Assembly (NCBI GenBank): GCA_965112155.1
Contig: OZ218114.1
Source: Podarcis liolepis
Lineage: Eukaryota
Length of the DNA: 64,000 nucleotides
Direction: 5' to 3' (one strand)
This document shows, one piece after another, positions 9,379 to 64,000 of the stretch. The notes beneath the pieces were generated by a model. That model made no database searches, was not told the DNA's origin, and worked only from the letters and a program-made list of their open reading frames with translations. Position 1 is the first letter of the stretch, and each line of letters begins with the position of its first letter. The position numbers and the translations under genes are program-made.

Positions 9379-11371
9379 GTGTAGAGGCTATTAGGTGTGT
9401 GGCTCCTTTGAATCTGAAGCAGGGTCAGAATTTTAAAGGGATGCATTTATATACATTTTTGGACTTTATTTCTAAATTTATGTTTTTTAATCTGGCCCAT
9501 TCCAAATGGGGCCAGGAACAGTCCACCCCTCATTTCTTCTCACAGTTCCTTTGGAGGGACCCACAGGTGCAGCTGCTGGGAGACTTTCCATGAACTATGA
9601 TTCACAGAAGCCAAGCAGCACAAATGGAGCACAGGGGCATGGCGAGTGGAAAGAGGGTTGTCCCACTGGAGGACTGGGGTCAAATGAATCACATGGCCAG
9701 CCTGTTTTGCTTCCAAGGCATCTCAGTGACTCTGAGTGTTTGCTGTTGCCTGGTGTGTATGTATAGAGCAATTTCCAAGAGCATTGCAAGTTGGGCAAAA
9801 TCTATCAACAAAGTGCCAGTGACCCTTTGCTAAGTGGCAACCTGTTATGGGGAACCATAAAAAGCTGGTCAGGGAAATGGTCCAAAATGTGTGGTGGTGG
9901 TGTTTTAGGCTGCAAATATCTGATATAGGCAACTGCGAGCCAGTGGGCTAGTAATGTTAATGGCAGCAGCAGATAACTTTTCTATCCAGCTGTTCACCAC
10001 AAAACAATGTTAAATAATATTTAGGCTACCTGTACTATTTATGCTCTGGCAGTTGTGCATTGATTTCCCCACCCGTTAGGAATTTTCACCTTTTTGGCTA
10101 CAGTTCTTCATAGTCTGAACCTCCACATGCTTCCCAATTGTTTTCTCCCTCAAACCTGGAAAACCTGGGCAACTACTTTTCAGTCCCCATGGGCCATCTA
10201 CCAGTGAGAGGGTGAGAGGGTAAGAGAAAAGGATGTGGAGGCTGGGAAGAAAACCCCCCAACCCAACCAGACCCCAGGGGATTCTTGCTTGCACACTCCC
10301 TTCTTTTGAGGCCTCTGTTCTTGTCAGCCCCTGTGCCTGGAATACCGGAGTAGGCTCTCTAATGATGACCTCATTATGCGTGCCACTACTGAGCCCAAAA
10401 CGCACTAATTTCCTGACCCGGTGAAATATATTTTAATAAGCTTGATCTAGAGCAGCGTTTAAAGACAAAGGGAAACACTTAACGTGGCTGTCAAAATAAA
10501 GCACTCTTGGGCAGATGTTAAAAATGTTAATAGGATTACTCCATCAGAAGCACCCAGGAGAGCCTGCCCTGTTTGTATACCTCTATTTGGCATTTTAAAG
10601 CACAGGGTTAAACTATTTCTTTGGAGAGAGAAAGAGAGGGGGAAATGGATTAAATTTTGAGGTCGTGCAATTTTTCTTAAATTAGTTTATAGCTTGCTGT
10701 GCTGCCCAGTAATGCCTATATTTGATTCTATGGATTTTTAGTGCTTACCGTGGGATCTTCAATCAAACCCAGTTACCCAGGCAAGTTCATTACACTTAAA
10801 AGTTTTTAAACCACCTCTTCCTCCCCCCCTCCCCCCGAACTTTTTAGTAGAATTCTGTCTCTCTTGATGCAACGATGGTGGACATCTCTGTTGTGCTTTT
10901 AATCATCTCTGTAAAACATTCCTGGCTTTGTGTACTTCTGTTTCAATGGGAAATGGAACAAATACTCACCAGGGCACTAGGAAGATTTGCGTTGACAGCA
11001 TCCTTTTTTGGGTTGTGACCAAAGTGAGACTTGCCACGGGGTGCATCTGTGACATACAGCCGCAGAACGCAACAAGAAGTTCCATCGTGTCACTCATGGT
11101 ATTTAACATTTCATGAAATGGCTGGATGAGATCATCCAGACGTGCAGTGTCTGGAGTGCGGCGTCATCTGTAGATCAGTCATACCCAATTCTAACTCTCC
11201 CTTTCATCTGACCCTGGGAAGACACTGTGAATTCTAAATAGGGGCCTTAAGTCAGCCATGAATTAGATGAGTGTGAGCAAAATTTGAAAAGACACATGTA
11301 TTGTTAGCTGGGAATCTGGCCGATGCTGGAGATATGTACCTTTATTGGAAAGTCTTGTACTTCCCCTAAAG

Positions 11372-21159: not shown

Positions 21160-21219
21160 GTTTTCCGGCAGCAGCCTACGGACCAGTAGCAGCGGCAGTG
21201 GCAGCAGCAAGAGGATCAG
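21160..21219 (+). CDS. MSI2: MSI2 coding exon (G)FPAAAYGPVAAAVAAARGS
   Basis: Polypyrimidine tract and CAG acceptor at 21157-21159; donor CAG|GTAGGG; phase 1-1; matches the MSI2 C-terminal region, one Ala shorter than the human sequence I recall. Confidence 0.97.
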
Positions 21220-21276
21220 GTAGGGGGGGCCGTGGAAGAGGCGGCTACATGGCATACCTTCAGAATGCAGGGCCAG
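21220..21276 (+). CDS. MSI2: In-frame extension of the exon through an alternative 5' splice site (GRGGRGRGGYMAYLQNAGP)
   Basis: 57 nt open in frame, ending at a second donor CAG|GTAAAA in the same phase (1); RGG-box peptide. Confidence 0.78.
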
Positions 21277-25040: not shown

Positions 25041-26382
25041 CGTCATGGGCAGTGCCCATGTGTCAAACGTTAGCCAGACCGTTATTAAAACCACGCAATT
25101 GTTGAGGACATTGCAACCCTCTATATAAACCAAGCCTTTACCCCCACCTTGACAACATTTCACTTTCTGCTTATTATGTTACTGATGAATCAGGACCTGG
25201 GTCGCATTGGCATGACGGTCTGCATCTTGTAACAAACTCTTCCAATGCACAAGTTTCACTATCAATACCACATTTCTGTTACGATTCCGAGCATGTATGG
25301 ATTTCGTGGGCAGGCTTCCCCATTCAGTTTGATGGAGGTGGCAGCTTTGGGAAATCCACTTATAGGGAAGGGAGCCATTGGGGCAGAGCTTACTGGAAAG
25401 GTATTGATGGTTTGAGGTGATTTTTTTTCCTCTGGCATATTTAAAGCACCAGTGTTTAGGGTGCCCTCTCCCCCCCCCCCCCAGTTCAGACACTCAGCCA
25501 AGCATCGTCAGCAGTCCATGAAGTGGGTGGGTGCCCTTCTCCTCCCCCATGGGGGAGCTCTGTGTATCCAGTGCCCTGATTCATGCAATTCTTCCTGCAT
25601 TAGGCCATCATGCATACAGGCCCCTGCATGGAGCACCCCTCACACGCTTTATTTGGATAGATGGTGGAAGACCACCATGTCCGTTCTTCTACCCTGTTAA
25701 TAGTACACTGAGCCGATTTCACCCTTTTCTGAAAATGCTGTTTGCTTCTTCATTTCACTAAGGTGAAGTTGGGGAGCGGGGTTAATTCAGGGTTTTGCTT
25801 TGTTTTTTAAAGGAATATAAAATTTGGCAATTAAAATGCATGAGCCAGATAGTTCTGTGGCTTTAGTTTCTTCCCTCGTGGCTGGAAAATGAGATGGCCA
25901 GTGATTCTGTTGCTTGGCCGTGGGGAGGCACCAAAGTCTACTTGCTTGACCACTTGTGAGTGACTGCACTAAGAACCAAGTGGTAAAACCCCCGAACAGA
26001 AAGATCCCCCAGAGTTCCTTCTTGCTCCCCTCCACCTTGGCCAGAGTCCTGCTCCTACTTCTGAAATCCTGAGTTCACCAGTTCCTTACTGTCCTTTATA
26101 CTTGCCAGCTATAACCAATCTCATAACATGAGCTACTGACCTTGATGGTGAGTGTGAGCAGTTATGTTCTTGTTGTTTTCTCTCTTGCTTGGTTGGGGCT
26201 GCTGTGAGAGAGGGTGTCTCTGAGGCATTCTTTCCGGCCTCTCTTACACTGGGACGTGCACTCCTCTCAAACACTCTTCTGAGCACGCTCAGCAGGAAGG
26301 TTTGTCCACACCTATTAATCCTCTCTCTGTGTCCAGCTTCTTGTTAGTAGCAGCTGGTTGCATGTTTTTTTTGCTTGTTCAG

Positions 26383-26396
26383 ATGAAACGGTTTAA
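26383..26396 (+). CDS. MSI2: Candidate MSI2 alternative last exon, coding part (D)ETV*
   Basis: Acceptor gttttttttgcttgttcag|; phase-1 reading GAT GAA ACG GTT TAA; AATAAA at 26531-26536. Inferred from signals only. Confidence 0.4.
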
Positions 26397-26530
26397 GAAA
26401 CGACTCATATCCAACTCTTGAAAAATGTCTCTCTCTCTCTCTTTCTCTCTCTTTTTAAAAATATATATTTTTGTTTATTTTAGTACACTTTCTCTCTTTT
26501 GGTTTTTTTAAAAATTACTTTCCCTTACTT

Positions 26531-26536
26531 AATAAA
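26531..26536 (+). terminator. Candidate intronic polyadenylation signal
   Basis: AATAAA with a U-rich upstream region and CTTGTTGTTCGTG downstream. Confidence 0.4.
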
Positions 26537-29500
26537 ACAAAACACTTGTTGTTCGTGAAACATCTCACATCTCCCCTTGCCTGTTCTTAGAGTGTTATGT
26601 ATCTGTGGGACTGAACTAAATGCATGCACTTGTCGTAGTTGTAACCGGTAGCAGTAGACGTAGTTGTAGAACATGCATTGTTGAGTTGATATTATAGGTT
26701 CTTGTCGGCTCGAAAGAGCATGGCAGTTGCAGTGTAGCCGCGGTTTGATTGGAAGTGTAGGTCAACCTGTGTAGAGCAATGCTGAACACCTGGATGCATA
26801 GTACAGTGATCATTATCTCCCAAACTTGGGCCTACCAAATTCAATCAGGACATTTTATTATTCTGCAAGGGCCCTTGGTGGTCTGGCGGGGGGGGGTAGT
26901 CAATTGACCGTTGTAAAAGAAAAAAAGTGACCCTTCTTTTAATTCTAAATACACTTACTTGTGAGTAGTTCCCACTTAAGCCAATGGGAGTTACTCATAT
27001 GTAAGTGCTTTATGATTTGAGGCCAAGTTTAATTTCAGCAAGCATTGTACACTCAAGGCTTCCTACAGAACATTAACCTTCTTAATATTCTGCATTAGCG
27101 CTCCGAATCCTTTTTGGAGGCCTTAAACCAGGCCGGCAGAGCAGGAAAGCCGTCCATTGGAGACCTAAGTTATGGAGAGTATGTACAATGACTAACCGTC
27201 AGAGTATGCAGAGGCACAAGGGAATTGGTTTTAGATCCTAAAGTGCAAATTTGGCTACGCCACAAACTTGCCACTGTTTGTATTCATTCCCACATTGCCA
27301 AGTTTTAGGATAATGTTTTGGTTTTTCCTCCCCTCAAGCACTACTGAACATTTCATGAACAGTCAATATTAGGTGTCCCAAGGCAAGTCTCATCATCTTC
27401 CTCATCAAACCAGCAAAATCGTCTTTTGCTTCTTCTCCCTCCCTGCATTTCTTTCTTTCTTTCTTTTTTGCACCTAGTTTTCTGTACTCAGCTTCTCAAA
27501 ATTGTTTTCCAAATGAGCAGCAGTGGGTAGGGTTGGCAGCTGGTAATTCAAGTCCTGAATGCCACATTACATTTGGTTTGTGGCTGCTACTGTTTTGTCA
27601 GCACATATCCTGCTGAGAGTAGATTGCGTACATCACCGTTCCCCTCCCACCCAGTTCGACATCTTGCCTGAAGATGCACTGCTGGTTTGGAGTGTGTTCA
27701 ATTTACCGAGCATGCTCAGTGTAGACGGTTAAATCCAAGCAGTTAACTCAGCATATGTTACTGGAAGAAATAAGATACGCTAAATATTGTTTCATTGTGC
27801 AGTTAAGAATATTGTTCTAACAGATCATAAAACATACGCCCCTCCACATGTTGTTGACCCAGATGACAAGTACATACCCTTCATTGATTGAAGGTGTCCC
27901 ACTTCCCTTATTGCGCCAGTATAGTTGTAAATCTCACGCACTTGAGGTATGATTATATAACTTGTCTCTTAAACAGCAAATCTACTACAAGGAATGGGGC
28001 CCACTGTTAAATGTGTGATGCAGGAAAATTAGATGGGTAACGTATCTAAAAGTTAGCAAAGCGGAAAATTGCATGGGAAGTAGCAATCCATGTCGTACAC
28101 TTAATTCCAGTACTTTCAAATATTTAGTCTTGTCATTAAGCACCTCTCTTGTTTGCAAATTGCAGTAATAAAAAAAGAAAAAAGATGGGAGCAACAGTTG
28201 GTTTGTGTACACAGAATGATGATGGGGAAATTTGTAGCAACATATTGGAACAGTTTGAATAGCCACTTGTGTTTTCTTCACAGTCCAAGGGATAGACCTT
28301 GAAGCAAGCCCTAGATGCTTAAATGTATATATATTACTGTCTAAAAAGTGTATAACATTTAATCCAAGTCATGTAGTCAGAATGTTAACAAGCACCACCT
28401 GGGGGATAGCAAGTGGTTTTCGAATGTCTTTCTCCTCTGAAAGACCCAATAATTACAACTGGAGCCCTAGACAGCTGATGCAATAGAAAGAGAAAATCTT
28501 AATGCACCTACTAATTTTCACTCTATAGTGTGGTAAAAAGAAGATGCATCTATAAATCTTTCTATTTGCCTAGTCCTATAAATGCTTCTATTTGCCTAGC
28601 CAGCAGAATGAGACTGCAATGATTTGTCCATAAGTTCAGAGCAGGAGGGTTATCCAGTAAACCAAATATTAAGCTAAGGCTTAGAAAGTGTATTTTAATG
28701 TAAAGAATGACACTACAACCTAGTACGCCCTTGCCTGCCTTGTGCTTCCCATAGTAGGTTGTATCCAGAGATAACTGTGTCCATTGGTTTTCTTCATTCC
28801 ACCACTGTATCTATGCTCTCTTTTAAAAGCAAGCACTTGAACTAGCATATATAACTCACAGCACTTTGACATATTTGAATGGCTTTTGTGTCCCCCTGCA
28901 CTTCCATTGCCTAGTTCTACTTGTCCCCTTTTGGACCACCAGGGAAAAAAAGATTATCCTGGTTCCTTAGGCATGGTTCACCCCAGACTGGACGGTCCTC
29001 AGCTCCTGTCAATTTCCCCACATTTAAAAGCTGGTCTGCTAACTTTTAAGTGCCAGCTATCTGGTTCAAATGGAGACGATCCTTTTCATCCTGGCCTGGC
29101 TTGTCCCTAAACATTCCCCAGTGCCTAAGAAACCCAAAGCCCTCTCCCTGATGCCATGGTCTGATCCAGACATTGAGACTCCTCAGCTCAGCCTGCACAC
29201 AGCCTCTTCTTTACCTGTCCCGCAGAGAGTCATGCATGCGACTCAGGTGGCACATCCCATTTCTCCACTTGAGGCATAACGAGAATGCGCTGCCCTGCAA
29301 GCCTTCCTTACTTGTGTGGCATGGTGGCAACCCACAGAGCGCTGGCTTCTGGCAAGGTCTTGCCGAAATCTTAGGAGATCTCATGCTGTCCAAGAGCTAC
29401 CTGCTGAGATCTTGCCAGCTGCCGGTGCTGCTTTTCTGCTGCTTTGGGTGCTGCCTCTTGGGCTTCTACCACTCAAGGCAACTATCTGACTCCAGTCAGT

Positions 29501-31660: not shown

Positions 31661-32028
31661 AAGGTAAAAGGTAAAGGTACCCCTGCCCGTACGGGCCAGT
31701 CGTGTCCGACTCCAGGGTTGTGCGCCCATCTCACTTAAGAGGCCAGGAGCCAGCGCTGTCCGGAGACACTTCCGGGTCACGTGGCCAGTGTGACAAAGCT
31801 GCTCTGGCGAGCCAGCACCAGCGCAGCACACGGAAACGCTGTTTACCTTCCCGCTATAAAGTGGTACCTATTTACCTACTGCACTTAGGGGTGCTTTTGA
31901 ACTGCTAGGTGGGCAGGAGCTGGGTCCGAAAGACGGGAGCTCACCCCGCCACGGGGATTCGGACCGCCGACCATACGATCGGCAAGTCCTAGGCACTGAG
32001 GTTTTACCCACAGTGCCACCCGCATCCC
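31661..32028 (-). mobile_element. Sauria SINE (Squam1-type), full length
   Basis: (ACCTTT)n tail seen as aaggtaaaaggtaaaggt; BovB-like 3' part (gtcgtgtccgactc); tRNA-like head (cccacagtgccacccgcatccc); TSD AAAGAGTA at 31653-31660 and 32029-32036. Confidence 0.92.
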
Positions 32029-32045
32029 AAAGAGTAGCACCCTAT

Positions 32046-32408
32046 TAAAGGTAAAGGTAAAGGACCCCTGACAGTTAAGTCCAGTTGCGAACGACTCTGG
32101 GGTTTCGGCGCTCATCTCGCTTTACTGGCCAAGGGGGCCAACGTTTGTCCGCAGACAGTTTTTCTGGGTCATGCGGCCAGCATGACTAAGCCGCTTCTGA
32201 CGAAACCAGAGCAGCACACAGAAACGCCTTCCCACCAGAGTGGTACCTATTTATCTACTTGCACTTTGACATGCTTTCGAACTGCTAGGTTGGCAGGAGC
32301 AGAGCCCGAACAATGGGAGCTCACCCCATCGTGGGGATTCGAACTGCCGCCCTTCTGATTGGCAAGCCCTAGGCTCATTGGTTTAGACCACAGCGCCACC
32401 CGCATCCC
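32046..32408 (-). mobile_element. Second Sauria SINE, different subfamily
   Basis: taaaggtaaaggtaaagg tail, shared core ggtacctatttatctacttgcact..ctttcgaactgctaggttggcaggagc, head ccacagcgccacccgcatccc. Confidence 0.9.
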
Positions 32409-39139: not shown

Positions 39140-39730
39140 ACACTTGTCTGTTTTTACTTGTTTACAAGCATTTCTAAACCACTTAATATTTAAAATCTCT
39201 GAACCATGTTGAAAATTGAAAACATAAAAACAGTGAAACTGTATAATAAAAACAGATAAAACCAATTCTAGTAAAAACAGGGTCCAGTCTTATGGGTCAG
39301 GGAAACTCTAGGCAAGAGAAAGTGGCTGAGGCAACGTCTGGCAGAGGAAAGAGCAATCCATAAGGCAGAGGCAACAGTGGAGAACACTTGTTTTTAGCTC
39401 TCACCACCCTATGATATTCTGTAGAGTATGGTGCCACAAGCCATTTCCCTCCAAATTGTCTAAGTGTCCTTACAAGTCTCCATAGCAGCAGTCTTTCAGA
39501 TAACGTGGCTTAGGGTTGTCCAAGTCTTTATATGTTAATAACAAGACTTTGAACATGACACAGACACTAGCTGGCAGCCAGTCCAGGTCCCTCAGCACAG
39601 GTGGAACATGTGTGCGTCCCGGTGCTCCAGTCAACAACCTGGCAGCTGCATTCTGCACTCCCTGCAGCTTCTCCGCCATTCTTGAGGGAAGCCCCACACA
39701 GCGAGCATGTCCTATTGTTGGGTCCTTCCA
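39140..39730 (-). mobile_element. Degenerate L2 LINE 3' portion
   Basis: ORF 39470-39697(-) KLQGVQNAAARLLTG..PVLRDLDWLP..FKVLLLTYK is an L2 ORF2 motif. Confidence 0.85.
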
Positions 39731-41619
39731 GCCTTACAGTTCTGAAGCACGCTTTGGACCCGTTTAGCTCCAACGTTGTACATTGGACCTCTACTAGCAA
39801 CCCAAACTAAGCAACGTCAAAGAACGGCCGCTGGTTTTTGAAGTATAAAAGTAGGAGACGGTAACGGCAGGTTTCCCGTTGGCTTGTATGCCCAGCGCTA
39901 CATGTGCTGAGTGTCGGCGCTCCTTGTTCGACAGCGTCTCCCTGATGTACACATTACTACACGCAGCTTCTGCCTCCACTTTCATCTGTATCGGCAGCAT
40001 TAAATATTATTATATCATTTACTCTCTCGAGCAGGAAAATGATGTTTGGCAGCTTGTTCTATGAATTTTTCATAAAGATAAAAAGCGGCCTAATCTTGTG
40101 AGCTTTAACTCTCAGTAGCAGTAATGGCTTTGATTTAAAGTGTTTTGTCTTAATGATAGTTATATTGAAAATTTCCTGCTGCTTTCAAGCACGCACGGTT
40201 ATTATCATAAACACTGATGGTGCAAACGGCTGCCAAATTGCGTGTGGCTGCTTATGGCAAGAGAGGAGAGAAAAAGAGAGACAGGGAGCTCTGTCGACAG
40301 GTTGCTGTCAGTGAGACCTTTCAATCTGAGAGCATTTTGAGTCTTCCCGAAGTTTTGCTTTGACCTCCAGAAGTGACTTTTGGGGTTCTCGTCACTTCTC
40401 AGCACTGTGGTCCACAGCCAGGCAAGGATAGCAAGATGAAGCAGAATCTCAGGCAGTGTTTGTACAGCTGTTCTCCTGGAAAGCACCCTTAATAAAGGAG
40501 CGTTTACACACGCTGCCATCATTCTGCGCTAAAGTCGGAACACACAGTTGTTAAGTGTCCTCTGGAGGGCCAAGGCCCTCAATAGAGACCAATTATTTAC
40601 ATCCACTTGGGCAGAAATTCCCCATGTTGCACGATCCTGCAGAAAATGGCCTACAAACAGATTTGGGGTCACTTCCCAATGGCTGATGCACTTGGAAAGA
40701 GAAAGAGTTGGAAGCCCAGGGTTTGTCAGTCCTGCAAGGAACACCACACCAAGGGGAATTAGTTGGCATGGAAATTAATTCTGCATGAGTGAGTTCTGCT
40801 TTGAATGTCCTTGTGGGGGAAATCACTTCCCCTCTCATTTTTCTCGGTGTGCACTCTTAAGATGTGTGTTGAGAAACAGAAGAGAGTCAACGTGTATCAT
40901 TCTGTCTAGCTTCTGGGAGATCTGCGATACATGTCTTTGGGACCTAAACAGGTAGCTATCTGACCCTTCACAAGTTACAAAGGCACAAGGCAAGTGTCTG
41001 CTTTGCAGCAGATATTTAAGAGTACTGGTCAAACCTCAAAAAAGAAAGAAACTTAGTAATGCAGGTGCTTTGTGCTACGATCTAATGAGAAAGAAACTAT
41101 CACAAAACTCTGCAAAGATTCATGGAAGTTTGGAGCAGAAAAGTAATTTCCTGAGAGTTATTTATTTTTCCCTGTTCAATTCTTTCCTGAATTCACCATC
41201 TGGAGGCTCTGTTTTCATAATGGGGTGATCTATTTTGGTGATACAGTTGATGCTGAAAGTAAGAAATAAATAAATAAATAAATCTTCCTTTCTGTTTTAT
41301 TTAAGTTCATCTTTTCTGTCTTGCAAGTTCAGACCTGCTCTTGCCTTTTGCTGGAAGGCAATTATGAATGTGGAAGAGCAAAATTCTTCCTGATGCTGGG
41401 GGGGGGGGGTGTTCTTTGTTGTTACCAGTGGCTTACAACACAGATATTAAAATGTACCTCTAGCCCACTTGGCTTGGGAGAATAAATGTGTAGACTGGTT
41501 TGTTAAAATGCATGCAGACATTTTTGCACCAACCAGTTTGAGAATTGCTGTCCTTTAAAGGATGCCCATGATGTGAAATAAGAACAAGCTTAATATCCCA
41601 AATCCCAACCAACTGTGGA

Positions 41620-42783: not shown

Positions 42784-42960
42784 GGATCCCCGATTACGGT
42801 TTCTATTCTCCGCCCGGTGACCAACGGGCTCAATTATCGTACGCGGACTATGGTTCCATGGGGCCTCGGGTGGCTCAGATGCTTCGTAGCGAGCACCCTG
42901 CTTCAGCGAGTAACTCCCCCCTTCACCACCTTCCCAGCCCGGATCAATTTAAAAGCCCAG
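42784..42960 (+). CDS. MSI2: MSI2 cassette exon, 177 nt, (G)IPDYGFYSPPGDQRAQLSYADYGSMGPRVAQMLRSEHPASASNSPLHHLPSPDQFKSP
   Basis: Acceptor tgtatctccag|, donor CAG|GTTTGT, length divisible by 3, phase 1-1 like its neighbours, no stop in the MSI2 frame, sharp GC/CpG rise confined to the exon, and Y/G/S/P composition like the Musashi C-terminal region. Confidence 0.85.
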
Positions 42961-44660
42961 GTTTGTATAGAATTTCATTCATTTGGGGAAGCAAAAGAAA
43001 AGGAAAATGGCAATAGCATCACATATTTAGCGATGCACAGAAAGAGATCTGCATGCTATGTATGCCACTTAATGGTTGGCAATCAAACTTCACTCCATCC
43101 TTTTACTCAGTTCTAGAATTTTTGTCGACTTTGCTTCAGTTGTGAAGGGCACAGTTTTCTTTTAGGGGCTGTTCCAGATCTGATCAAATGTCAATCAAAA
43201 CCTTTTGTAGAGGCATGACAGCAGAGAGTGAAGTAGCTCATTAGATGTGCAGGGCAACCTTATTCATGTCTACTTGGAAGTAAGTCTTGAGCTTAAAAAG
43301 TGCATTCCCTCTTCAGATGGGTGTGAATCAAAATGTAACTGTATTCTTTAAAGATTATATAAAGGACCCTAATAATTTGTGTTGATTTTTTCAAGATTCT
43401 TCTTAACCCCAGAGATTTTGATGCAAAAGGTTTCAAACTGCATATTCTGTTGAAAGTTATTCTTAGCTAGGTATTTGACCTGAAAGAGATGCTTAGAATA
43501 AGGTGTGTGCGCTTGTGTATGAATGATACTTCATCCTCCTGAGAATCTTTTACTTTGCTTCTTCCAGAAATTTGCTTCTGACATTTGATGAGCTCTTTCA
43601 TTAGCAATCTGATCCTAAATACCTCTTCAGTGCACCTATCTTACGCTGCATAAGCTTCATGTAGTTTATCATTTCAACTGAACTGGGAACTATTGTTAGA
43701 TTTAACTATGGTTTCTCCAAACAATCCAAGATCAAATTGTGTTTTCTGATCCTGACTTGTTTGGATAAAACCATTGTTGAAATTAAATGAAAATCCTGGT
43801 TTGGATGAAACAATAAACAGTGGTTAGTTGAAAATGCTTTTGATTTGTTCTTTGTGGCTATAACAGGAAGAGAGGGGAGAGCAGACCAAGTCAGGCCACT
43901 AAATTACAACTTAGTGTTATGTCCAAACCTGGTCATTGTTTTCTACAAGGATTCCACAAATGTATCCATGACTTAGATTTTTAGCACACTCTTTCTTGAA
44001 ACAGACAGTCTTCTCAGGGCCCCTTCACACCTGTTTGTGAATCATCACCAAATCCAGATTCGCAAATTCTGCATTCCACCTAGAATGAACTCTCGCAATG
44101 AAACCTTGGTTTACATTATGTGTTGAAAGAGTTCCTACTGGTCTTAATGTTTAAATAAGAGGAGGAATGTCTTGCTGTTGCTCATAGGCATGTGGTGGCT
44201 TCTAAATATATACTTACATAGAGTTCACCACTTGAATGAGTCAGCCATCATCTCTCCCCTCCCCACCTTGGAAAATCCTACGTAACTAGATGGCCTAAAT
44301 ACCTGTACATGGGGTTGATTTTTTGACACTCTTGTAAAATTGCTGAAGTGCTTTTGCCTTGAAAATAGGAAGCCATCATTTCCTCCTCACTTTGTGAATC
44401 CACCTCAGTATAATGCGCCATATGCTAAGGCAGATGTCATAATGAATCATGGCTGGAAATTCCTCCCCATTTTATCAAAGAGAGTTTATCTTTCAGTGGT
44501 GACCTTTCTTGTCCAGAACTGGAGTAATTTGTGTGCAGGCTTTGTGTTAACATGCCAGTTCATAGGACAAAGTGCCTGATAAGCCAGCCTTAGCTCTCAC
44601 TTGTCAGCAGTGCCAGCAAAATCATGCTCTGGGCTCTCGCCACACAAGCACTCCTTAAAG

Positions 44661-54670: not shown

Positions 54671-55251
54671 TTAAAGAAAAGCATTTCAAACCTCCCAATC
54701 TTCATGTACCTTGAGAGCTAAAAAGTGGGTGGGTGGACAGGACATATATTTCATCTGAAAGTTTTCAGTGGATCCAAAAAACGGTTTTCTTTCTTTGCTT
54801 ATCAACATTTAATATCAATATTAACACAATGTGTAGTCTAAAACTAGTTCCTTTGTAGTTTGCATGGGATGTGAATGCTGTCTCGACGTGCCCAGATCTA
54901 GAAAACTCGTTTTACTACTGCATGAGCATCAAATCAGATGTTGAAAAATATATATTTTTGTGATAATTTGGTGAAACTGAGCACCTACCGTCTCTGGTTG
55001 CAGTAGTGTGTTGAATGGTGTTTTTTTTTTCCTTCTCTCTTTATACATATTTCTATATATTTGGAGCTCCAAGCTTCTTAGTAGTATGGGCTGACTATTA
55101 TTGAGTACTTGCTCTCCTATCGCATGGCCTTGGTTAAGTGTTAGAAGTTGGACCTAGGCTGTTTTCTTTTCTTTTTTTAGTGTTTGGCTTTGTAATAACT
55201 GTGCATGCTCGGCTTCTGGCCTCATACCCAGCTTTATTCTCTGCACACCAG

Positions 55252-55460
55252 TCTTGAATAGCTACAGTGCTCAACCGAATTTTGGCGCACCCGCTTCCCC
55301 GGCAGGCTCCAACCCAGCCCGGCCCGGAGGATTCCCAGGGGCGAACAGCCCGGGTCCCGTTGCAGACCTCTACGGTACAGCCAGTCAAGACTCCGGTGTT
55401 GGTAACTACATAAGTGCTGCCAGCCCCCAGCCTGGCTCCGGCTTTGGGCATGGAATTGCT
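55252..55460 (+). CDS. MSI2: MSI2 coding exon with two acceptors (55252 long, 55306 short)
   Basis: (V)[17 protein letters not shown]|[52 protein letters not shown]; CAG acceptors at 55249-55251 and 55303-55305 (54 nt apart); donor GCT|GTAAGT. Confidence 0.97.
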
Positions 55461-58014: not shown

Positions 58015-58056
58015 GGGCCTTTGATTGCAACGGCTTTTACAAATGGATACCATTGA
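58015..58056 (+). CDS. MSI2: MSI2 last coding exon GPLIATAFTNGYH* (exon continues as UTR to 58092)
   Basis: ttttag| GGG CCT TTG ATT GCA ACG GCT TTT ACA AAT GGA TAC CAT TGA is the conserved Musashi C-terminus; donor GAG|GTATTC at 58092/58093. Confidence 0.97.
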   Translation, partial: GPLIATAFTNGYH

Positions 58057-58206
58057 AACGTTACACAGGGTTGGTTGCCATCTCACTTGGAGGTATTCCA
58101 GTATATAGCATTTATATTTTCAACTATGTCCCTTATATTTTGTCATTTTTTTTTTACATTCTTACACTCTTCTTTCTTCCTGTCTTTAAATCCTTTTTTC
58201 CTTGTA

Positions 58207-62588: not shown

Positions 62589-62777
62589 ATAGGAAGGTGC
62601 CTTATACTGAGTCAGACACATTGGACCATGTAAATGGCTCGGTGCTATCTACACGGGTTGGCAGCAGTTTTTCAGGGTTTCAGACGGGGTCTCTCCCAGC
62701 TGTACCTGGAGATATCAGAACTTGAACCTGAGACCTTTTGCATATAAAGCATGTGTTCTGCCACTGAGCTATGGCCC
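62589..62777 (-). mobile_element. tRNA-derived squamate SINE (Squam3-like)
   Basis: ataggaaggtgccttatactgagtcagac..gaacctgagaccttttgcat..ccactgagctatggccc (reverse complement of the A/B-box head). Confidence 0.75.
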
Positions 62778-63635
62778 TGGGACCAAGTTATTGTCAATAT
62801 TAACATCCCTGGCACTTAACAGAACCCTGATTTTCTTGCATGGACCTAGAAGCAGAGAGTCCCTGTTTGCAGCATTAGCTCCCTGCCTGTTTCTGTTTTA
62901 AGGGTAATTCATATTATGTGTAAGTTACCATCTAAGCGCCCCTTGTAGGTCATTTGCCTAAGAGTCTCAATCACCCCAGTTCTTCTTTCCCTATCACATT
63001 TCTCGGCAGATAGGTGCAGTTACCACATGAATAATAGACTCTGTGTGTATGCTGCGGTGCCATTAGAGCGGCAGAAAGCTGGAGAATTTGATATTAGCCA
63101 CCGAAATCAGATTCCCTAAGAATTTTAAAAAAGAAAAACAAAAAAGATTAAATTCTGACCTTATACCTGGAAGCTGCGCCCACTAACATTTCAGAAGTTG
63201 GGAGTGGGGAGGCTAAATCTGCTTTCCACCAGTCAGGGGAGGGGACTTGTGCGCGCCGAATAGCTCCCTGTGAATCACAGAATAAGGAGGCATACAACAT
63301 AATTGCATAGTGTATTTAAGCACCAGAATCCACTTCCCCTGTTTCTGAACTTGAGCTGATGTGGTGCAGCATTTTGATATTCTTAACCTGGTTGGTTAGA
63401 CACAGCTCTGGATATCAACATGCATAAGTCCCTCGCCCTTTAAGACAAATGTATGGTGGCCTGTTGGGAAACAAATGACATCCCAGGTTCACCACCTTCA
63501 AAGTGTGACCATAAAACCCATAAAAAGGCCCCTAGAACTAGTAACATGTCTCTGAAGTGTTGGCTATAATTGTTGTTGTTTTTATCTATTCACACACTTT
63601 CTCTCTTTTTTTCCTTTTCCAAAAACGCGCTGTAG

Positions 63636-64000
63636 AGTATATCTGGATGTCCAGGCAAGACAGGGCGAAGTTTCTGAATGGTTCCATGTTTAGGTGATAC
63701 ATCATCAATCAGACTTTGAGCATTGCATCATCACCAATAACCCACACAAACTGGAGGTGGCATTCAGCGGACTTGGGTTGTCCACAATCTCTATCATCTC
63801 ACAAACCTGCTGTACTATATAGAACAACAGCTTTTTAAAGAAAAGAATATGTGTATATATATATAATCCATTTTGTTCATTTTATTATTTTTCTTGATGT
63901 TTTTCCCCCTTTGAAATCTATTTTAATCACTCTTTTGTAGTATTTTGACATAGGCTTGTAGTCACGTAGACCTACTACTTTGTGTATTTAGAAAAAGCCT
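63636..64000 (+). other. MSI2: MSI2 non-coding terminal exon (start of the long 3'UTR; runs off the window)
   Basis: Long pyrimidine tract and TAG acceptor at 63633-63635; agtatatctggatgtccaggcaagacagggcgaagtttctga closely matches the human MSI2 3'UTR start as I recall it. Confidence 0.85.

Follow-up and report, generated by a model that had tools for sequence, protein, structure and literature searches.

The MSI2 Locus and a Predicted Alternative Last Exon

The stretch of Podarcis liolepis DNA analyzed here (64,000 nt; NCBI GenBank assembly GCA_965112155.1, contig OZ218114.1; hereafter the window) carries the lizard MSI2 gene, which encodes Musashi-2, a protein that binds RNA. Local tblastn searches with squamate Musashi-2 proteins against this 64-kb window placed exons of the gene across it, on the plus strand, in agreement with the gene assignment made in an earlier interpretation of the locus from its letters only (the sequence-only reading). 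In the intron that follows exon 11 we found a probable alternative last exon, starting at position 26591, which would truncate MSI2, and directly behind its stop codon a dense group of UAG and GUAG words that is a candidate binding site for Musashi proteins. Positions are those of the window, and features lie on the plus strand unless another strand is given.

Exon 11 ((G)FPAAAYGPVAAAVAAARGS; 21160-21219) was mapped by tblastn against squamate MSI2 proteins and ends in phase 1 (TCA G|gt), its final G being the first base of the first codon in an alternative last exon. The form of this exon with three alanines is common to the window, Podarcis P0224 and Salvator P0207. An alternative donor extends the exon by (G)RGGRGRGGYMAYLQNAGP (21220-21276); as this donor leaves phase 1 as well, it would fit that last exon too. 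The extension (GRGGRGRGGYMAYLQNAGP) is also present in annotated fish MSI2 isoforms, for example as GRGARGRGGYMAYPQNAGA in Polypterus P0066, and is not specific to lizards. The coding part of the predicted last exon is found at 26591-26619, where (G)AG TGT TAT GTA TCT GTG GGA CTG AAC TAA, read in phase with the phase-1 G of exon 11, gives ECYVSVGLN and a stop codon (TAA, 26617-26619). It is preceded by a 3′ splice site (26563-26590) that consists of a branch-like CTCAC, with its A at 26567 and thus 23 nt upstream, a tract in which 14 of 16 bases are pyrimidines, and the sequence cctgttcttAG, the AG lying at 26589-26590. When we searched the window with a degenerate pattern made up of an acceptor, nine codons and a stop, this was the one place that matched, and none of 100 shuffled sequences gave a match.

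The prediction is carried by annotated proteins. About 390 MSI2 proteins were fetched for a comparison of C-termini; the query for the isoform search was the frog MSI2 fragment P0174 (residues 1-65), and tetrapod isoforms were listed, with the shorter ones first among ties. Two proteins labeled Homo sapiens (P0344 and P0350) were left out of all comparisons, and exons were compared singly and by reference rather than through a joined spliced model. The C-terminus of Anolis carolinensis isoform X27 (P0286, XP_062816222.1, 272 aa), ...AAVAAARGS-ECYVSVGLN, closes with the nine residues read from the window, letter for letter. The same nine-residue end closes P0320 (293 aa), which corresponds to A. 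sagrei isoform X17 (XP_060613065.1), A. carolinensis XP_062816219.1 and the older XP_016852748.1; the end is found in two Anolis species, in two isoform contexts and in two annotation releases. These Anolis isoforms (...AARGSECYVSVGLN) agree with the window in the junction that follows exon 11, in all nine residues and in the stop codon, which indicates an orthologous exon. They differ in that they come from an anole and not from the lacertid family, in that Anolis exon 11 has one Ala fewer, and in that they are gene models without a published description, compared here as proteins. The anole and lacertid lineages split well over 100 million years ago. That an anole and a lacertid have the tail, the splice phase and the stop in identical form points to a conserved exon, and because the window matches a Podarcis protein (P. 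lilfordi isoform X2, P0224; 100% match, out-of-frame pieces included) while the same tail occurs in Anolis, this conservation would extend across Lacertidae and Iguania.

We conclude that the sequence from 26591 onward is probably a conserved alternative last exon of MSI2 that had been predicted before, different from the human exon discussed below, and that, by homology, a truncated MSI2 made from the intron after exon 11 is real. Such a protein lacks exon 12 (55251-55460; tblastn), which holds the two conserved Ser-Pro phosphosites (..ANSPGP.. and ..AASPQP..; site assignment according to PMC5599597). The sequence-only reading had also proposed a truncated isoform without the phosphosites; the isoform itself stands by homology to Anolis, whereas its exon is located at 26591, 208 nt downstream of the acceptor chosen at that time. 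Full-text literature searches for ECYVSVGLN and RGSDETV gave no match. When an eel protein was the query, the MSI2 proteins found were all from fishes, and none truncated after exon 11 was among them. A metagenome scan with a degenerate pattern for the coding part of the ECYVSVGLN exon gave 0 matches, a result that carries no weight.

The closest known counterpart is human MSI2 variant 2 (NM_170721), in which an alternative exon, "11b," follows exon 10 and gives the end DYLPVSQDIIFIN, without the two regulatory phosphoserines (MacNicol et al., 2017, PMC5599597). This protein still binds RNA, is not switchable from repressor to activator (PMC5599597), and promoted anchorage-independent growth, that is, transformation, of NIH3T3 cells (MacNicol et al., 2017, PMC5599597). 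The likeness to the lizard exon lies in an alternative last exon that truncates MSI2 before the phosphosite exon. However, the human variant branches off one exon earlier and ends in another peptide, and its lizard orthologue, ending in YLPISQDIIFIN-stop, is a separate exon at 2-40, 26.5 kb upstream of the ECYVSVGLN exon. This orthologue was located by a six-frame peptide scan and tblastn and is cut by the start of the window; the letters at 1-40 (..C TAT TTG CCG ATT TCA CAA GAC ATA ATT TTT ATC AAC TAG) read YLPISQDIIFIN-stop. The same end closes P0296 of Anolis, P0237 of a turtle and P0291 of a caecilian. The possibility that the ECYVSVGLN exon is itself the orthologue of human 11b was ruled out by the six-frame scan, as the DYLPVSQDIIFIN-like end sits at 2-40, upstream of exon 11.

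A Candidate Musashi-Binding Cluster Behind the Stop Codon

The untranslated part of the exon starts at 26620, and word counts over its first portion (26620-26801) gave ten TAG, eight of which are GTAG, together with a TGCATG at 26621. We regard this region as a candidate Musashi-binding cluster (PMC3326303, PMC9509328). The sequence-only reading had counted 11 TAG against a single CTA over 26588-26801, and our counts agree, with TAG starting at 26588, 26636, 26649, 26655, 26661, 26667, 26695, 26735, 26758, 26772 and 26799, and the CTA at 26616. The other words reported there, namely five TAG within 26636-26669, GTAGT twice (26635 and 26660), ATAGT (26798) and TGCATG at 26359 and 26621, were likewise recovered. 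The location assigned to the cluster did not hold, as it had been placed in a downstream intron and is in fact exonic, right behind the stop codon of the ECYVSVGLN exon: the TAG at 26588, which opens the series, forms the acceptor of this exon, and the other ten lie inside it, starting 17 nt past the stop.

The eight GUAG words lie within 26635-26774; AUAG words at 26694 and 26798 flank them, and the spacings range from 6 to 40 nt. A repeat scan delimited a core at 26634-26670, which is built of three degenerate copies of a 12-nt unit (CGTAGTTGTAGA-like) and holds five GTAG, with GUAGUU occurring twice. In the 3′ untranslated regions (3′ UTRs) of its targets, Msi1 reads GUAG through RRM1 and UAG through RRM2, with linkers of 1-50 nt, and GUAGUU is among its tested binding oligomers (PMC3326303). 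The motif obtained from retina by enhanced crosslinking and immunoprecipitation (eCLIP) is BUAG, found in introns and 3′ UTRs (PMC9509328). The combination of GUAG for RRM1 and UAG for RRM2 with short linkers seen in the lizard exon corresponds to the Musashi-element motif as defined in PMC3326303.

We compared the density of these words with shuffled sequence, a check that had been set beforehand, and found UAG to be above the shuffled background. Across the window TAG occurs on average 2.5 times per 214 nt, and local dinucleotide shuffling gave a mean of 6.3 (P(≥11) = 0.0066). As 11 TAG were also reached at two other loci on the plus strand, and three loci on the minus strand have 10-12 CTA, the TAG count taken alone is only moderately unusual. 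GTAG is more distinctive, with 8 occurrences in 214 nt against 0.62 expected (local shuffle P = 0.0006). This is the maximum of either strand in the window; the highest counts elsewhere are 4 (plus strand) and 5 (minus strand) per 214 nt, and more than 5 were never obtained in 60 whole-window shuffles. Outside the 26634-26670 repeat there are still 6 TAG and 3 GTAG in 177 nt, and GTAG remains 3- to 6-fold enriched. Beyond 26820 the TAG density is back to background, about 1 per 100 nt.

The region also stands out in CpG content. The observed/expected (o/e) ratio reaches 0.5-0.83 over 26351-26700, compared with 0.20 for the median of the window and 0.54 for its 95th percentile, which places the region in the top 5%, like the cassette exon at 42784-42960, and bears out the earlier remark that CpGs are unusually retained here. 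No RNA structure was detected in the cluster (fold z = 0.01), and no Rfam family lies over it. A protein word search with a 65-aa open reading frame on the minus strand over the cluster found no candidates and was uninformative, and a metagenome pattern scan with the repeat core gave 0 matches, which carries no weight. Sequencing runs of about 100 million letters from several organisms contain 20-90% of the sequence words of 26200-27000; these may be target-capture data for a conserved element, an idea to which we give no weight. From the words and their position, 26620-26801 may be described as a candidate Musashi-binding cluster in the 3′ UTR of the truncated isoform.

Interpretation of the Locus

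Our preferred explanation, to which we give a probability of roughly 0.55, is that a conserved alternative last exon at 26591 produces a truncated MSI2, that the tail of this exon carries a candidate Musashi-binding cluster, and that its poly(A) site lies further downstream. The nearest canonical signal after the stop is a candidate site at 28167-28210, made up of AATAAA and, about 30 nt later, a GU-rich run (GTTGGTTTGTGT); cleavage is best placed near 28190, which would give a candidate 3′ UTR of about 1.6 kb. In this model the exon 11 donor at 21219 or 21276, both in phase 1, would be spliced to 26591. The resulting protein would retain the two RRMs together with the linker up to and including exon 11, add the nine residues ECYVSVGLN, and lack exon 12, with its two regulatory phosphoserines, and the remaining C-terminus. 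With exon 12 skipped, the exon would offer, in addition to the variant-2 exon at 2-40, another way to an MSI2 that is not switchable by phosphorylation. Judging from human variant 2 (PMC5599597), such a protein would keep RNA binding and would not undergo conversion from repressor to activator. The 180 nt past the stop may then act as Musashi-binding elements in the 3′ UTR of this isoform, where MSI1 or MSI2 would most likely influence how the mRNA of the truncated isoform is translated or how stable it is, and possibly the definition of the terminal exon.

Several observations weigh against this explanation. A hexamer scan found neither AATAAA nor ATTAAA in 26620-28166. Donor-like sequence is found twice, 340-380 nt past the stop (ctt|GTGAGT, 26961; tat|GTAAGT, 27001), and leaves room for an internal exon. 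The Anolis records are computed gene models (XP_), compared as proteins, and no lacertid protein with the ECYVSVGLN end was among the 120 of 891 matches listed, although this is a weak negative, as clusters hide isoforms. Five of the eight GTAG belong to a small local repeat and are thus not independent events. Finally, proteins of the hnRNP A/B type also bind UAG and GUAG, so that motif density does not identify the binder.

Three other explanations were weighed. The sequence-only reading had proposed a tiny last exon from 26383, with the peptide DETV, a cleavage site near 26550 served by the AATAAA at 26531, and an intronic UAG cluster that recruits MSI to enhance exon use. The elements it named are all present: the AG at 26381-26382 is a strong acceptor (13 of 16 pyrimidines, a T8 run, CAG) matched in quality by 3.6% of the AGs in the window; the phase-1 G of exon 11 (21219) followed by GAT GAA ACG GTT TAA gives D-E-T-V (26381-26396, counted from the acceptor) and stops at once (26394-26396); and the AATAAA (26531-26536) is followed at a normal distance by a GU-rich element (TTGTTGTTCGTG, 26548-26559). 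Promotion of exon inclusion by Msi1 from the proximal downstream intron is also known (PMC4991804, PMC13175383). Nevertheless, we consider this model very improbable. Of about 390 MSI2 proteins, the Anolis cluster of short isoforms included, not one ends in DETV; the annotated truncated Anolis forms end in ECYVSVGLN, and their acceptor, in the same intron and 208 nt downstream, comes with a conserved nine-residue product. Pairs of acceptor and poly(A) signal as good as those of the DETV exon, with a GU-rich run, occur at chance frequency (2 on the plus strand against 1.5 expected), and cleavage near 26550 would overlap the branch point and the pyrimidine tract of the supported acceptor. It is most likely that the proposed DETV exon, like the AATAAA at 26531, belongs to the intron and lies upstream of the true acceptor. 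As none of the proteins fetched bears the DETV end, the proposal that E-T-V is a class III PDZ ligand has no basis: the pattern (X-[D/E]-X-hydrophobic-COOH) fits the letters, but the supported end, G-L-N-COOH, does not fit it.

In the first of the two remaining alternatives, the ECYVSVGLN exon would be an internal poison exon, joined to downstream sequence through a donor near 26961 or 27001 and leading to nonsense-mediated decay, with the GUAG cluster as an exonic element for the control of MSI2 dosage. The two donor-like sites after the stop and the 1.5 kb without a canonical poly(A) signal speak for it, as do the frequency of autoregulatory poison exons in genes of RNA-binding proteins (PMC11791180, PMC12632421) and the listing of MSI2 among the non-transcription-factor genes richest in ultraconserved elements (PMC13513235). 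However, the donor sites are two matches to GT[AG]AG, possibly by chance, in about 1 kb scanned, and they lie in a 34-nt inverted repeat that resembles dispersed-repeat sequence. The NCBI pipeline usually issues no protein for decay candidates whose stop is far upstream of the last junction. Because the Anolis models were issued as proteins (XP_), we think a poison exon less likely, and on balance improbable. It is a more plausible, if still doubtful, alternative that the exon is real and the cluster has no Musashi-specific role, either because a small duplication generated it locally in a stretch rich in G+T and poor in C, or because it serves as a platform on which hnRNP A1/A2B1 or DAZAP1 silences or modulates the exon. 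The core of the cluster is a repeat (a 12-nt unit three times, or an 18-nt unit twice), and the stretch is poor in C (32 C in 214 nt), so that CTA is depleted by composition alone. Equal TAG counts at two unremarkable plus-strand loci, and the lack of RNA structure and of an Rfam family noted above, are in line with such a view. On the other side, a GTAG density as high as this is reached nowhere else on either strand of the 64 kb and in none of the shuffles, the enrichment persists outside the repeat core, the CpG retention suggests constraint, and the cluster sits directly behind the stop codon of an isoform of a protein that itself reads GUAG.

Two known systems help to interpret a Musashi-binding cluster in this position. 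In Musashi-dependent photoreceptor exons (Murphy et al., 2016, PMC4991804; PMC9509328), as in the lizard, UAG clusters lie near a regulated alternative exon, with MSI1/2 as readers. However, the photoreceptor sites are in the proximal downstream intron of internal exons or microexons (PMC4991804, PMC9509328), while the lizard cluster is inside the exon, past the stop. Because of this location, the downstream-intronic-enhancer mechanism is not applicable as the sequence-only reading had stated it, and binding in the 3′ UTR is the more natural interpretation. Such binding has a parallel in Xenopus oocytes, where, according to the summary in PMC6884704, Musashi1 acts on an element in its own 3′ UTR, with positive feedback via cytoplasmic polyadenylation (Arumugam et al., 2012). 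As in Xenopus, a Musashi protein would in the lizard act on UAG-type elements in the 3′ UTR of a Musashi mRNA. As summarized in that source, the Xenopus case concerns the paralogue MSI1, its main 3′ UTR and one element, and is experimental, whereas the lizard case concerns a truncated MSI2 isoform with eight clustered GUAG words in its tail and is a candidate only.

A more speculative step, which we consider a long shot, is that the cluster of eight GUAG words lets Musashi-2 gauge its own abundance and shift output between the phospho-switchable full-length protein and a truncated constant repressor, by terminal-exon definition or by control of the mRNA. If true, this would be a feedback loop on isoform choice that has no described counterpart in the Musashi family and that may be common to squamates or to a wider group. 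Lizards are predicted to carry two separate exons able to make a truncated MSI2, and the second of these has the strongest Musashi-motif cluster of the 64 kb directly behind its stop. If Musashi binds this cluster, the locus would be a compact case of an RNA-binding protein adjusting its own isoform balance, in a gene whose product, Musashi-2, controls stem-cell and tumor programs.

Other Features of the Window

In the intron upstream of the supported acceptor, a TGCATG hexamer of the RBFOX type lies at 26359-26364, about 227 nt from that acceptor. It is followed by a CU/U-rich tract containing (TC)12 (26425-26515), which may be of the kind that PTB proteins bind, and by the AATAAA with its GU-rich element (26531-26560), 55 nt upstream of the acceptor and a candidate poly(A) signal only. 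The sequence-only reading had taken the U-rich, UTR-like stretch and the AATAAA for the tail of its exon; in the revised model both are upstream of the supported acceptor and intronic. Downstream of the stop, the 34-nt inverted repeat that spans both donor-like sites (26941-27018; 74% complementary) resembles a fragment of a dispersed repeat.

Between exon 11b and exon 11, tblastn gave a match resembling a micro-exon (VLTVGSSIKPSYP, about 10729-10779), comparable to VLSVGSSIKPSYPALLPYLNAS in A. sagrei isoform X13. Further downstream, tblastn placed a cassette exon of 59 codons (42784-42960), the normal C-terminal end (GPLIATAFTNGYH-stop, 58015-58053) and a further alternative end (63636-63674). 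The P. lilfordi protein P0224 runs out of frame through exons 12-14 (55430-55459, 58017-58091 and 63635-63694, plus strand) with a 100% match, and looks like a frame-shifted model. Some 600 nt 3′ of the cassette exon, at 43566-43830, is the sole other plus-strand set of a strong acceptor (AG at 43566), AATAAA (43812) and a GU-rich run, which may be due to chance or represent another alternative end. The CpG o/e peaks of the window (up to 1.0, with 15-16 CpG per 214 nt) are located at 39650-39960 and 31700-32160, away from the mapped MSI2 exons. On the minus strand, a tRNA-like match at 62707-62778 scored at the Rfam gathering threshold (29.7 vs. 29 bits) and is perhaps a tRNA-derived short interspersed element (SINE).

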